Origin: Eutreptiella sp. 'Long Island Sound 2002'
Lineage: Eukaryota > Protista > Euglenida
DNA length: 64,000 nucleotides
Direction: 5' to 3'
Assembly: GCA_964036045.1 (NCBI GenBank)
Contig: OZ038378.1
Location: forward strand, 13,144,001 to 13,208,000
The position numbers and the translations under genes are program-made. Every line of letters starts with the position of its first letter. The first letter of the stretch is position 1. The notes below the pieces were generated by a model. It did no database searches and was not told the DNA's origin. It worked only from the letters and a program-made list of their open reading frames with translations. Positions 22,467-28,559 of this stretch are shown here, in pieces.

Positions 22467-24816
22467 AGGTGCAAACCCGTTTTGGAAAATGTGGAGAAAG
22501 GAGCAGGGTGTTGCCAAGGGGGCACACAGGGGGCATACAGCAGGCATACAGTGGGCGGCACATAGAGGGCATGCATTGGGAGTTAGCAGTGCAAAGCTAC
22601 AATGACGCGGGGCACACAAAAGCACAGCAGCCAGCTAGAGCACAAAAAGTGCCGGTCTGTTCCACCCACAAAGAATTGCACAGACTGTCTGGTGTGGGCT
22701 AGAAAGGCAGGACCGGTTCCCGCACAATATCCTCAGCCCTGCTGAAGATGGAAGTGCGAGAAGAAGTGTGTCAAAGGGCAACTCCATGCAAAGAAATGGA
22801 ACAGAGGAATGCAAGGGGTTGCTCCCTGTCCACCTCAACTTTGGCCCAGGGCGGCGGCCGTTCTAGCAGCGATATTTAGGCAGCAGGGCACACAGCTTGT
22901 GTGGCATCTAATCCAACACAATGGCCGTCCCTTGCTGGATGGTGCTTGCGCCAACTTCAGGCCCTTGGAGATGCATCTCTCTCTGCCCATGCTGTCCTCT
23001 AGTCCCATCTTCAGGTCACGCCGTTGGCAAGCGGTGTTGGAAATATTCCTGTCTGGAAGATGCCTGCGTGCCGCAGAGTTGCTTGCACATGGCACCATGC
23101 GAAAAAGCGGTGTGTGCCAAACAGCGCATTGCCAATCACAAGGTTCGGGGGCCATGATCAATTATCCATCCAACGCACAACCAGCATCTGCACCAGTGGC
23201 TGTAGCACTGCGAAGCACATCTGCCTCTGCATCTGCCTGTCAACCCAAAGTCCGTGTAAATTGCCGCCCAGCACTCCAGCATTGGACAGGCGGGATGGAT
23301 TCATCAGGCTGTGCTTCGTCTGATATCGAAACTGTGAGACGCACACAAAGCGGTTATCTTGTCCATATCCACATATATCACGTGTTCGACTCGACAGGCC
23401 TGGTTGCCGGCGGTTCTACAGAGACGCCGCTCACACGTTTGGGCATGGCGGCCCATCATGTAGAGGGGCTTTTTCTGGGGTTGTCACATCCGCTCACATG
23501 GATCATTGGTCATACTCCACAAACCAGGCTGGCCAACATCCAAGCCCCAGCCGAGCTCCGGCCAGTCAGCAAAGACCACTTCAGCACGCCAAACCCCCCC
23601 TGGCGCAAATACCAGCAACAGCAGCAAAACTGACGGGAACATCAATGAGCGTACATTGGACAAAGCCCAGGGCTGCTACGCGCAGGCTTCGAGCCTTGAA
23701 AAAGACCTAATAATAAAGGAACGGCTGCCACTGTCTTGGCGAGGACATTTGGCCAACCTGACTAGTCGTTCCCCTACGCCAAGGCCTTTTTGGGTGTGAG
23801 TGTGCATACTTTGTGAAAATCCTTAACTTGGGCGTTTGAATGTGATTGGGCTCAGGCTCGACTCGAACCGCCAACCCATTTTCCAACCTAGTCCCATCTG
23901 CTGTGCTGCAGGCACCACAGATACTGCTGTTCCTTGCACCCTTTCGGTGTTGTGAGCACCCCTCCAGACGTGCATCCGATGAAGAGATCGGTTGCACATT
24001 GCTCGCAGAATCAGCAAGCAATTCCTTCCAACTTGCGAAGCATGCATGATTTGAATCAGGCCGCCAAACTTCAAGACCCTGGCAGTCTCCATGGGACATC
24101 CGGCTCACTGAGCCGTGTGTGTGGGGTGTGTGTGTGCTAAATATGTAATGGGCGCCTTTCCGTGGTCATCTTAGAGCATTGGGAAACTTTCCATGCAGCA
24201 TCCGTCGATTTCGTGCATTTTACCTCAAACTCCAATTTTTACAATGGTGGTCCTCCTGTTGGAACCACCACAAATCCCGCAGGCCTCAGCCAATAATTCG
24301 GCTACAATTCGATGTACCCCACCATCACTTTGCCCGAAGGCACTGCCTTTATCTGAATCCAAACATCAACTGGTGCACTGGCGCGCGCAGCAGGACGTGC
24401 ACTTACAGGCAGCCTACACTTCGATTTCACCCCCGACGCGATGGTGCACTACTGTACTGTCACTGCCCGCTCCATGCGACCAATGGAAACATAAGAGATA
24501 CCCTGTCGCCAAATCGCAGCGGCGCGTTTCATCCCAGACAGCCCCCATCTCTCGCCAGGCCTTCAGTCTGCCAGTGCCGGGTCTGACGACAGCCCTTCAG
24601 TGCTTTCGTGCTGTCCTGAGTGGACAATGAGGCAAACTCTCACCTCAGCACTGCCCCGAACTTGCATCTGCATTCCAAATATCCCATTCGCTGGTTTCAG
24701 TCATGGCTGAGAGATTAGGACATGATGAGGCGCTGCTACTGCACTGTCAACACCCTCCGAGCTCTGGTGCAGTCCTGCTTGGACTCTGAGTCACACCGGC
24801 CCCCCTTGTGCCCTCG

Positions 24817-27021
24817 TCACACATCATCTTGGTCTGATTCATCGGGCCCCCTATCTGAGGCCTGTTCAGCCTGCAAAGCCTCAAGGGCTTCTCGGGCAGC
24901 TTCCTGCTCGGCCAATTTCTTTCTGTTGAAGATGCGGCCTTGGAATCGCTGGGTCCCTCCGTCACTGGTCTTGATCTCCAGCGATGCCCGAAACCGCTGT
25001 GCCGACAGGCTCTCGACTTGGAATTGCACCACGACTTCGGGGTCGCGCTCCCTCAGCCATCGACAAAGGAGACCCTTCCAATTGGGCGCTAGAAGCGTCA
25101 ATGCCCTCGCTCGCGCCGCATGGCACACGGCGGATGTGTCGCTCACAGCCCTTTCTGTGGGTCGGTTGTTGCGATCCAAATACCCCAGCTTGACCATTTG
25201 GACCACAACCACGAAGATGAACCAGCGCTTCTCCTTTTCGTACGCAGGAAGCGCATTCCTCGGCATCACGTCATCCATCGCGAGGCCACCCCAATATTCC
25301 TCAACGTCACTCAAAGTCACGACTTGATCTCCGTCCGGCGATGGGTAGCCAACCTCCACCAACTTTCGGCAGATGGGTGTGGGCTTGGCGCAGGGCGCAG
25401 TCTCTTTCAGCTTAAACAACACCTTCTCGATGTCGACGGACAATTTCATGGTCTTATTATAATACTCGCAAAAAATGGTCATGCAGTTCTCGAAAGTGAC
25501 ATCGTTTCCATCCGGCTGGACGTGCGGGTATAGCTCCGTCGAGAGGACCGCAGGGGGGGCTATGGGCCCCGGTTTCACGTCGACGCCGATGTTTTGCAGG
25601 TGCTCATACAAGGCCTTCGTTACCCAAGCATCAGCAGCCGCGTAGCTTATCTGCCGACGGCTCACTTGCATGAGTGAGGCCCGTACCGCTTCCGCATCCT
25701 GACCTGCTTCACTGCAGGCCAACGTCCCTAGCGCTCCGAACGCCTGGGCACATCCCTTGTCTTTGTCAAGCGCTACACCCTTCATTTTGGATGCGAAATC
25801 CACGAGGCCATAAGGCGCCCTCCTTGCCATCAACCCCATCTCCGTCGAATAGCGCTGCACGTTCACCCAATTCCACACCGGCGCGATGGATTTGAGGACC
25901 CTCCATTCGTCGTTTCCAAAGATTACCTTGACGATTCTCCGATCGGATAAAAGTTGGGCCAATCGGCCATCCCTCACCCCTTTACGGTCGCGTGCAATGA
26001 ACACGTAAACCCTACAAGACGTGGCCACTTGCACCAACAACGGTGGCCGCACTTCAATGCACTCCGAGTCCAACGCAACAAACCCGCTTTCCTTGGCCTC
26101 ATGAAGCATCGCGCAAAAGTCCTCCTCCGATCGGATCACACAAATTTCCGGCGGTCGGAACGCAGATCGCATCAGAACGCGTGGCTCAAGGGGGGGCAGC
26201 AAGGGAAGCAATTGCTCCGCCAGGTCTCGCGTGGCTTGTCTGTAGGTTGCACCAACGCCCACGATTTCTTGAGCCTTTGATGGGATGTCAGGATGGGGTT
26301 CCTCCAACCTACAACGGCACACTCTCCCCTCCCATTCGTATTCGTAGTTGACGTGGCCCCAGCCGTCCTGTTGGAAAATCGTCGCCACCGCTCTCGTGGC
26401 ACAAATGGGTACATCGACCCGGTTTTGTGGTTCGGAGGACGGATCGAGGATGGCGGCCATCGTCCACCGCCGCGAATTCCACATCAATAACAAAACAAAC
26501 AAGAACGAACACCCGATGGCCCGCATAGTCCAGTGACCCGTGGCATAGATCGGGGTGCGACCCGTGTTCGCTTCCCATGGCCCATTGGTTTGTCTATCAG
26601 CACCCCGGTCGGCAAATGTCGAGTGTGGTGGCACAATTGGCACTGCCTTGTCTCCATGGGAAATTGTCGGCAGGGTCCGTGGGACTGAAAATGCCTCTGG
26701 TTGTGATTGTAAGGCAACATGTGGGCCGGCCCAACGTCCGGCGCGACCAAGGGCCGGCGGCAAATGACGAAGTGACGAAGGCGGCGAAAAGAGATTGAAG
26801 CTGCGCTCACCGGGTGCTTGCATGGTTCCTCGAGCCGAACTCCACGCTGCTAGCACAGCCAATGCTACCAGAGAGACCCACATCAAATGCCACTTTTGGG
26901 GAAATCGTGGATGGCGGTCATCGGCGGGATTGAGTGTGCGACATTGCGTCAAAGTGTTCATGTCGCATTCTACGAGCAACAAGGGTAGCATCGTGTTTGC
27001 AGCACGATTGACCGGCATCAT
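24817..27021 (-). CDS. Putative plastid-targeted DEDDy 3'-5' exonuclease (WRN-exo/RNase D-like) with dsRNA-binding-like domains, up to 734 aa, intronless
   Basis: ExoI FVALDSE (D318/E320), ExoII KVIFGNDE, ExoIII QISYAAADA. C-terminal dsRBM-like segment (RFRASLEIK...FQGRIFNRKKLAEQEAAREALEAL) and a degenerate one at aa ~208-275 (IVGVGATYRQATRDLAEQLL). The N-terminus has a hydrophobic segment (aa 44-60), a S/P/A/R-rich linker, a second hydrophobic segment (aa 168-181), then NSRR and MAA. The start could be the ATG at 27021, 26991 or 26961. Confidence 0.9.
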   Translation of the reverse strand: MMPVNRAANTMLPLLLVECDMNTLTQCRTLNPADDRHPRFPQKWHLMWVSLVALAVLAAWSSARGTMQAPGERSFNLFSPPSSLRHLPPALGRAGRWAGPHVALQSQPEAFSVPRTLPTISHGDKAVPIVPPHSTFADRGADRQTNGPWEANTGRTPIYATGHWTMRAIGCSFLFVLLLMWNSRRWTMAAILDPSSEPQNRVDVPICATRAVATIFQQDGWGHVNYEYEWEGRVCRCRLEEPHPDIPSKAQEIVGVGATYRQATRDLAEQLLPLLPPLEPRVLMRSAFRPPEICVIRSEEDFCAMLHEAKESGFVALDSECIEVRPPLLVQVATSCRVYVFIARDRKGVRDGRLAQLLSDRRIVKVIFGNDEWRVLKSIAPVWNWVNVQRYSTEMGLMARRAPYGLVDFASKMKGVALDKDKGCAQAFGALGTLACSEAGQDAEAVRASLMQVSRRQISYAAADAWVTKALYEHLQNIGVDVKPGPIAPPAVLSTELYPHVQPDGNDVTFENCMTIFCEYYNKTMKLSVDIEKVLFKLKETAPCAKPTPICRKLVEVGYPSPDGDQVVTLSDVEEYWGGLAMDDVMPRNALPAYEKEKRWFIFVVVVQMVKLGYLDRNNRPTERAVSDTSAVCHAARARALTLLAPNWKGLLCRWLRERDPEVVVQFQVESLSAQRFRASLEIKTSDGGTQRFQGRIFNRKKLAEQEAAREALEALQAEQASDRGPDESDQDDV

Positions 27022-28559
27022 TACAAATCAAATGGACTACATGACGTGCATCTAAACGATAAATGTGGGTGCCAATGTGACCACGGACACCACGGGGAAA
27101 CCACTTGGTCGCCACGTACGAGCCATTGCTAAGTGCAACCTCCCATTGGCTGGAGGTTGTGGGCTCGGTACTTGAAACTAGGCAGCTCGTATTTCTTCTC
27201 CGCCACATATGAGGTGTTGAATTCTAGTCACAGAAACATAGCATCAGGTGATGTCTGTAGCGTTAGCGCAATATCCTTCAACGGCGCTCTTTTGTAGTTT
27301 ATAGTGATGCACACCCGTGCCGCACTCCCACGACCTGTGAGTGCTTGAAGGGCTAGTCGTTCTTTGTTGAGTTGCTCAAGTGCCCGTCTTGTGTCGCCAT
27401 GTGCATGAGAGGACATAACCATCCTAGCCAACCTCTTTGGCGGCGAGCGGCACCTCCATCTAACGGGTAACACCCCAAATTTTGGGTCACATGTCACCTT
27501 TTCCTTGCAAAGACATGTTGGGGTTTTTTTGGGGGTGCCGGACTTGGATAATCATTTGACCACTACTGATGCACAATTGCACATTTGTCACTTTTTATGC
27601 CGTGTGTTACCGATTGGTGTTACCCACTTCTGTGGCGTCATGCTACAAAATCAACATTTTGCGCGGTAACAGGTACACATAGTAACACCCCCGGGAACAC
27701 TTGTATTAACACCATGAAACCTATCCAACGCGAAAACTTAACATTTAAAATTTTTGTCACAAATTTCTTGCACAATTATTGCGAAAGTTGCGGGTGCATA
27801 CCACCTCATTGTGTCTTTTTTTGTCTTGTTTTGCTAAGCCAAAGGGTCCCGCCACTCCATTCAAGAACTTAAAAACGCACGGGGACTTGGATTTGGGCTA
27901 TTTGCGTCATAAATGGGTTGAGGGTAACTTCACCGTGCATACTTAGCCCCCCCCTTGGGGAGGACCTATAATCAACTTTTGGGCATTTTGACCCCCTTTT
28001 CTGCCTCTGCGCCCCCCCCCTAGCTCCTTCTCGTCCATACCCCTCTCTAAAGGCACCACAAGGCACACAAACAGTAAACAAGCACAAAGCAAGGCAAGGA
28101 GGGATCAATTTGCAACTACTCACCCACTTGGGACATGAGTTGAGGCTTTTCACATTGAGTCGTATGACGTCCTGCAGCTCTGGATAGCTGTTCCGCCTAC
28201 GTCGAATCATGTGCTTAAGCACATCTACAGTTAGCTTGGAACATAGCCATGCGCATTCAGCAAAGCAAACATCCCTCTCCTTCACTCATTGCTTCGTCTC
28301 CTTTGCATGGTTCTCGGTTAGTGCCAGCGGGCAATGCAATACTGCTTATGGTTGTTGGCAACCCTCTAATCGCCTCCTACGTGAACGCCTCCAAGAGCGT
28401 ATTTCGCTGTGGGAACAAGAAGTTCTCCAAGAAAGACTCCTATCTATATGGAAGACCCACGTTATGAACTCTGAGCTGGAGGATGACTCACGTGAATGTG
28501 AGTGTCAAAAAACTTACCAGTGCACATGTGATTCCTATGAAAACCTGGAGAGTTTGTAG

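Follow-up and report, generated by a model that had tools for sequence, protein, structure and literature searches.

The 64,000-nt window of the Eutreptiella sp. 'Long Island Sound 2002' genome analysed here (assembly GCA_964036045.1, contig OZ038378.1, positions 13,144,001–13,208,000) carries an expressed open reading frame (ORF) without introns at 24817..27021 on the minus strand, as read from the window and from RNA contigs. It encodes a pre-protein of 734 amino acids (aa). The protein joins a DEDDy 3'-5' exonuclease to a Dicer-type DUF283-like domain and to double-stranded RNA-binding domains (dsRBDs). This architecture is new, was seen in no other protein among 1.84 billion representatives, and ties an exonuclease to an expanded, undescribed family of euglenid Dicer-type helicases. 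Judged from its sequence, the protein is probably an exonuclease directed to double-stranded RNA (dsRNA) and acting at 3' ends, a function common to the two destinations weighed below, a cytosol-facing membrane and the plastid. All features of the gene lie on the minus strand and coordinates refer to the window.

The exonuclease domain comprises aa 297–477 (25591..26133) and is identified by Pfam, Foldseek and a family profile. Pfam DNA_pol_A_exo1 (PF01612) matches these residues with 33.9 bits against a curated cut-off of 23.6. The catalytic set is complete, with Asp318 and Glu320 in LDSEC, Asp371 in GNDEW, and Tyr460 and Asp464 in YAAADAW. Asp371 would be the equivalent of Asp143 of WRN when the two motifs are anchored on the tryptophan that follows. 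All catalytic residues are kept across the exonuclease family, and the acidic pair at Exo II likewise. The AlphaFold2 (AF2) model of aa 188–487 shows a DnaQ-like fold with a predicted local distance difference test (pLDDT) score of 90. Foldseek found 78 structural matches at E ≤ 1e-3, and the best 50 of these 78 are all DEDDy exonuclease domains. The WRN exonuclease matches at 2.5e-6, while NrnC/diDNase, TbRND, RNase D, Rrp6, EXD2 and Nibbler match about equally well (E about 1e-6 to 1e-5). The family profile finds WRN at 1e-8, NrnC at 2e-7 and a Mut-7 homologue at 7e-6. Identity to any solved DEDDy member is only 15–21%, and the domain is a generic DEDDy exonuclease with no close subfamily. 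A search of PDB sequences with the whole protein gave no match, and a word-index search returned only the protein itself. The Eutreptiella protein agrees with the PF01612 enzymes (WRN, RNase D, Rrp6, Mut-7/Nibbler, EXD2, NrnC) in fold and in all five catalytic residues. The HRDC, helicase and zinc-finger partners of those enzymes are missing from it, 20 aa are inserted between Exo II and Exo III, and three domains of dsRBD fold flank its exonuclease. TbRIF4, QIP and ERI-1 are likewise 3'-5' exonucleases and act on small interfering RNA duplexes, and TbRIF4, from a fellow euglenozoan, prefers dsRNA (PMC3359990). These three are DEDDh enzymes and are therefore analogues rather than relatives; orthology to TbRIF4 is ruled out by the same difference.

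The domain that follows the exonuclease, aa ~498–644 (25090..25530), was placed by AF2 modeling, fold search and the context of its relatives. Pfam gives no hit in aa 498–644 (PF03368 included), and a weak Dicer_dimer hit falls on the C-terminal dsRBD instead. An exhaustive HMMER search across 1.84 billion representative proteins gave 129 matches, about 100 of them limited to aa ~497–637. In these relatives the domain lies 50–100 residues past the Helicase_C domain of Dicer-like proteins, often with dsrm, RNase III or Z-alpha next to it. The carriers include a Dicer-like protein of Cymbomonas tetramitiformis (1791 aa), with the domain after the helicase, and helicases of Polykrikos, Gymnodinium, Durusdinium, Amoebophrya and Arcella; one member of a Durusdinium cluster is annotated as a Dicer homologue. 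With 80 sequences, AF2 models the middle domain at a pLDDT of 89.5. The fold search over 48,161 representative PDB chains put the DUF283 domains of ancestral, mammalian and fly Dicers in the top three places (Z 7.5–7.9), and 36 of the next 47 listed are dsRBDs or RNA proteins carrying a dsRBD. A second fold comparison added DUF283 of DCL4 and Dicer-1; the solved Dicer matches (fly, mouse, plant and ancestral) span Z values of 7.3–8.2 over ~100 residues, which are moderate values. In the ESM Atlas the best match is a cluster of haptophyte helicases (template modeling score, TM, 0.64). The profile of the domain aligns weakly but in register with the dsRBD profile (probability 22%), and against PDB sequences it found nothing but spurious designed repeats. 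Because fold, position in the relatives and the weak in-register profile match agree, the middle domain is, as modeled, a Dicer DUF283-like domain of dsRBD fold with a helical extension. It shares the fold of Dicer DUF283, and its sequence relatives hold the DUF283 slot after the helicase with dsRBDs next. In the Eutreptiella protein, however, its neighbor is an exonuclease instead of a helicase or RNase III, it has extra C-terminal helices, and Pfam Dicer_dimer does not recognize it. A domain unseen by Pfam can now be named as the one that follows the helicase in many Dicer-like proteins of protists.

A canonical dsRBD occupies aa ~645–720 (24862..25089), assigned by alignment and profiles with the pattern NWKxLLxxW ... 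GxxxxRKKxAEQxAAxxAL. Scored alone against PF00035 it reaches 17–21 bits, under the cut-off of 23. The NWK...W and RKKxAEQxAA motifs stand out in its family alignment, 22 of its 24 relatives match Pfam dsrm, and the family profile finds DRB4 at 2e-13 as well as RNase III, HYL1, TRBP, Loqs and PKR. By these sequence features the C-terminal domain is a genuine dsRBD. The N-terminal domain, aa ~205–276 (26194..26409), is specific to the family and is recognized as dsRBD-like by its AF2 topology. In the model (pLDDT ~90) aa 208–274 run alpha-beta-beta-beta-alpha (H21–31, E39–44, E47–52, E68–70 and H73–87 in the numbering of the database entry P0001), and the domain is kept in the Euglena orthologues. 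Its sequence gave no significant match to dsRBD or DUF283-like profiles (hhalign probability 3%) and no PDB sequence hit. The sequence-only reading of this gene had described three intact Exo motifs and a convincing C-terminal dsRNA-binding motif, and a hidden Markov model check, with the motif and profile evidence above, bears out both. The weaker N-terminal motif that it also described holds as a fold topology but not as a sequence match, and the ~150-aa middle domain, which it had left unassigned, is real and is the DUF283-like domain described above.

The C-terminal dsRBD retains the RNA-binding KKxAE motif, and the module that it forms with the DUF283-like domain is common to dsRNA-handling proteins with dsrm, RNase III and Z-alpha domains. 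Both points speak against a DNA 3'-5' exonuclease of WRN/EXD2 type, engaged in repair or organelle DNA maintenance and using its dsRBD folds for protein contacts. Such an enzyme would account for the structural matches to WRN, EXD2, diDNase and the exonuclease domain of the apicoplast DNA polymerase, which are as good as those to RNases, and for the annotation of the nearest bacterial relative as EXD2-like; DUF283 is, moreover, a protein-interaction domain. We consider a DNA substrate very improbable.

The genome holds further paralogues of the exonuclease on C21, C5 (two) and C4, those split into exons being read exon by exon. The C21 paralogue has the same domain order with two C-terminal dsRBDs, one of them over the Pfam cut-off. 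The C4 paralogue (C4:3929900-3933169) has in-frame TAA and TAG stops and is probably a pseudogene. Outside Eutreptiella, Euglena alone yielded the exonuclease with the N-terminal domain, in a cluster including E. mutabilis and as EG_transcript_21307 of E. gracilis. The Euglena mRNA is complete, with a 5' spliced leader (SL) and a 3' poly(A), and encodes 409 aa that end just past the exonuclease. Among the 1.84 billion representatives the combination of exonuclease and DUF283-like domain was found in no protein but the Eutreptiella paralogues. Since the Euglena orthologue ends after the exonuclease and the fusion was found nowhere else, the fusion is, within the present sampling, peculiar to Eutreptiella. 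The next relatives of the exonuclease are a bacterial protein of 216 aa and one of Pelagomonas (~30% identity). An algal plastid origin is unsupported by the Pelagomonas protein (405 aa), the nearest eukaryotic outgroup; the N-terminus of that protein is rich in lysine and arginine and looks nuclear. In the ESM Atlas, clusters from Chlorophyta and Nucleocytoviricota (301–378 aa) likewise combine PF01612 with a dsRBD by language-model features, which is a lead only. These proteins are shorter and are not known to carry a leader or a DUF283-like domain, and HMMER did not recover the clusters at E ≤ 1e-3.

Relatives of the exonuclease are few, and those of the DUF283-like domain show flat identities of 33–45% within the genome and beyond. 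The DUF283-like and dsRBD module also occurs in helicase proteins of 600–1000 aa in the same genome. One of these, a DEAD/Helicase_C protein of 811 aa encoded 350 kb away, is 40% identical over the module; its helicase comes first, and no leader was seen in its exon read. The Dicer-type helicase proteins of the genome as a group share the module with the exonuclease at 33–40% identity but have a helicase and no exonuclease. Genes for Argonaute/Piwi and RNase III occur in the same genome. The helicase family is large, with at least 12 further loci matching the middle domain. The 811-aa protein (C1:13.516-13.519 Mb) and another of 877 aa combine DEAD/ResIII, Helicase_C, DUF283-like and dsRBD-like domains without RNase III. 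A protein of 990 aa (C8:29.56 Mb) has two DUF283-like domains and several dsRBDs; within it ISTCLPIFLSYCWAV is repeated exactly, starting at aa 396 and again at aa 704. Among the relatives elsewhere, a Polykrikos kofoidii protein (P0012, 1091 aa) and a 563-aa protein (P0015) join a Dicer-type helicase, the DUF283-like domain, a dsRBD and Z-alpha, the last in three matched stretches of P0012. By analogy, this dinoflagellate layout resembles that of an innate-immune sensor of nucleic acids.

The public gene call, which is the sole database entry for the protein (P0001), has 547 aa and begins at Met188. Its N-terminus is very probably short by 187 residues. We aligned four public RNA runs to 23800–28200 (4401 nt). 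Contigs of an estuary metatranscriptome match at 25746–25906, 26298–26456 and 26586–27037 with 100% identity and no joints, and contigs from two small 2013 libraries reach 27056 and then run into AGAAATAGACACTCAGAAA (plus strand). RNA contigs in all cover 25746–25906, 26298–26456 and 26586–27056 and are unspliced throughout. The reverse complement of AGAAATAGACACTCAGAAA is TTTCTGAGTGTCTATTTCT, the modified Eut-SL primer (...TATTTCTTTTCG) that Kuo et al. 2013 (PMC3621762) used for SL-selected 454 cDNA. Each SL contig has one mismatch, which is accounted for by TTTCG of the primer over genomic tttag. The SL-primed contigs of the two libraries define an AG trans-splice acceptor at 27052..27053, with the spliced leader joined at 27051. 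The 5' untranslated region read from the sequence has 30 nt (27022..27051) and contains an upstream ORF (uORF) of four codons, ATG CAC GTC ATG TAG at 27037–27051, in frame with the main ORF and closed by its stop (TAG 27039–27037). The long frame opens with ATGATG at 27021, and Met1/Met2 is its first AUG. As the exon starts at the SL junction, the entire N-terminal leader lies within the mRNA, and initiation at Met188 would require bypassing eight in-frame AUGs. The genome agrees with the primer at 7/10 of its final bases, and mispriming on a longer transcript is possible; even then the leader stays in the transcript, and the in-frame TAG shuts the frame upstream. Codon usage in the leader is uninformative, and 1.8% of random 561-nt frames in the window are open, so that the open frame of the leader alone is weak evidence. 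The sequence-only reading had taken the gene to be nuclear and its hydrophobic segments to be translated. Trans-splicing agrees with the former, and the 5' end given by the spliced leader is upstream of the two segments, not downstream of them, as would have refuted that reading. In this gene and in the Euglena orthologue alike, the spliced leader is followed at once by ATG, which opens a tiny uORF. It has four codons in Eutreptiella and eight in Euglena, and in the latter it runs into the main start; it may be a shared feature of translational control or chance.

The leader has ~187 residues. A Kyte-Doolittle scan shows a signal-peptide-like hydrophobic segment at aa 46–63 (LMWVSLVALAVLAAWSSA; 26833..26886) and a second at aa 167–181 (26479..26523), which is followed by the basic NSRRW and then TMAA and resembles a stop-transfer anchor. 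The two segments, basic residues and MAA are those of the earlier description. The spacer between the segments, aa 64–166 (26524..26832), is rich in proline, serine, threonine, arginine and alanine and poor in lysine, aspartate and glutamate. The same layout is found in the C21 paralogue and in one of the C5 paralogues (C5a), although the sequences are unrelated and the spacer is unconserved. The anchor segment with its basic C-terminal flank is present in all family members, the Euglena orthologues and the E. gracilis fragment included, and lies just upstream of the catalytic part.

From this anchor we tentatively place the protein on a cytosol-facing membrane, in a silencing or dsRNA-surveillance role. 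The leader would insert the protein in a membrane derived from the endoplasmic reticulum (ER), where it would remain with its catalytic part of ~550 aa in the cytosol, the side on which the basic flank of the anchor should hold it. The three dsRBD-fold modules (N-terminal, DUF283-like and canonical dsRBD) would grip either duplex RNA or a protein partner, while the DEDDy site (Asp318, Glu320, Asp371, Tyr460, Asp464) would strip nucleotides from the 3' end by two-metal hydrolysis. The RNA substrate and the role in silencing are suggested by the domain context, and the task would be to trim or clear dsRNA or small-RNA duplexes. The exonuclease may work alongside those Dicer-type helicases of this genome in which the DUF283-like and dsRBD module recurs. 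The DEDDy relatives Mut-7, Nibbler and WEX function in RNA silencing, and the PIWI-interacting RNA trimmer PNLDC1 is anchored in a membrane. If the catalytic part does face the cytosol, the protein would be a membrane-tethered trimmer of dsRNA or small RNA in a lineage where RNA silencing is almost unstudied.

Several observations weigh against the membrane-tethered assignment. The leader with two hydrophobic segments has exactly the layout of euglenid class I plastid presequences, in three copies. An ER-resident anchor would have no need of a disordered luminal stretch of ~100 aa, members of the exonuclease family turned up in no organisms but euglenophytes with plastids, and the N-terminal dsRBD-like domain is without the canonical RNA-binding residues. 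The cytosolic-side topology of the anchor is also the topology of class I plastid proteins in transit. The main alternative is a class I presequence that directs the protein through vesicle transport into the plastid, where it would trim duplex or stem RNA (3' ends, antisense pairs, introns). We regard this as a serious possibility, though as a doubtful one to rely on. It is favored by the SL junction upstream of the leader and by the order of segment, spacer, segment and basic residues, which is shared with class I plastid pre-proteins (Durnford and Gray 2006; Novak Vanclova et al., bioRxiv 573709) and, in all three copies, with PsbP and PsaF of the same genome. The restriction of the family to euglenophytes is in its favor as well.

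The geometry of the leader fits this plastid alternative less well. Five bona fide class I controls of this genome (PsbP, two PsbP-like and two PsaF proteins) have 6–11 aa before segment 1 and spacings of 60, 62, 63, 68 and 75 aa between the segments. The PsbO, PsaD and PRK loci were unusable as controls, having upstream exons or polyprotein repeats or lying on small foreign-looking contigs. In the exonuclease family 45–62 aa precede segment 1, and the spacings are 103, 100 and 78 aa (45 and 103 in this gene). Both the N-terminal extension and the spacer are therefore longer than in the controls and the geometry lies outside their range, with two of the three copies at 100–103 aa; the 78-aa spacing of one paralogue is close to the 75 aa of one control. 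The published stop-transfer range in E. gracilis is residues 97–130. The spacers of the family are rich in Ser/Thr/Pro/Arg/His/Ala and poor in Lys/Asp/Glu, as published for E. gracilis transit peptides, which would speak for plastid import. However, random translation at 56% GC nearly reproduces this composition, proline excepted, and it therefore carries little weight; we discounted it as plastid evidence.

The orthologues also argue against the plastid. The Euglena proteins have a single hydrophobic segment with a basic C-terminal flank, preceded by 57–75 residues unlike a signal or transit peptide, so that the first two parts of a class I presequence are absent from an N-terminus verified by its spliced leader. 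EG_transcript_21307 was seen neither in the plastid nor in the mitochondrial proteome tables of E. gracilis as searched, some of the mitochondrial files being incomplete, which is a weak negative, and a literature look-up for it found no mention. The sequence-only reading had proposed a plastid presequence, a look for orthologues in euglenid plastid proteomes as a check and, as a rationale, the clearance of structured introns. Its presequence stands as a class I layout, shared by two paralogues, and is put in doubt by the geometry and the single segment in Euglena; the E. gracilis tables, as searched, gave no such orthologue. The intron rationale fails for Eutreptiella gymnastica, with 2 putative plastid introns against 160 in E. 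gracilis (PMC3308993). The proposed plastid ribonuclease for structured RNA retains an intact exonuclease with dsRBD-fold flanks, but through its middle domain the protein is linked with Dicer-like silencing proteins, the relatives of its module.

A further reading has an RNA-silencing module (Dicer-type DUF283 and dsRBD) joined to an exonuclease that is specific to euglenophytes and enters the secondary plastid, which would provide Dicer-like trimming of dsRNA in the plastids of Eutreptiella; we think this rather unlikely. To our knowledge, a Dicer-like system for finding and trimming dsRNA is known in no organelle. A plastid location would make the protein a new kind of organellar RNA nuclease. 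A different compartment, such as a membrane of the mitochondrion or the outermost plastid membrane, or a scaffold with little catalysis appears improbable. The basic N-termini of the Euglena proteins with their hydrophobic segment could form a bipartite mitochondrial sorting signal, and the mitochondrial RNase D of T. brucei is among the structural matches; set against these are the absence from the E. gracilis mitochondrial tables as searched and, for a scaffold, the catalytic residues conserved throughout the family.

Some minor observations were made on the control genes and the spliced leader. On the small contigs C413, C2091 and C888 the PsaD, PsaF and PRK genes have neither introns nor leaders, and these contigs may be DNA of plastid origin or foreign DNA within the assembly. 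At C5:158423078-158438875 at least six PsaD-domain units stand in tandem, as in a euglenid polyprotein gene or tandem gene cluster. TTTCTGAGTGTCTATTTCT, the 'modified' SL core with a C in the T run, has 70 exact copies in the genome. Six copies were read; five of the six have ca before and tt after, with a further T in four. They may be variants of SL-RNA genes or retroposed leaders.

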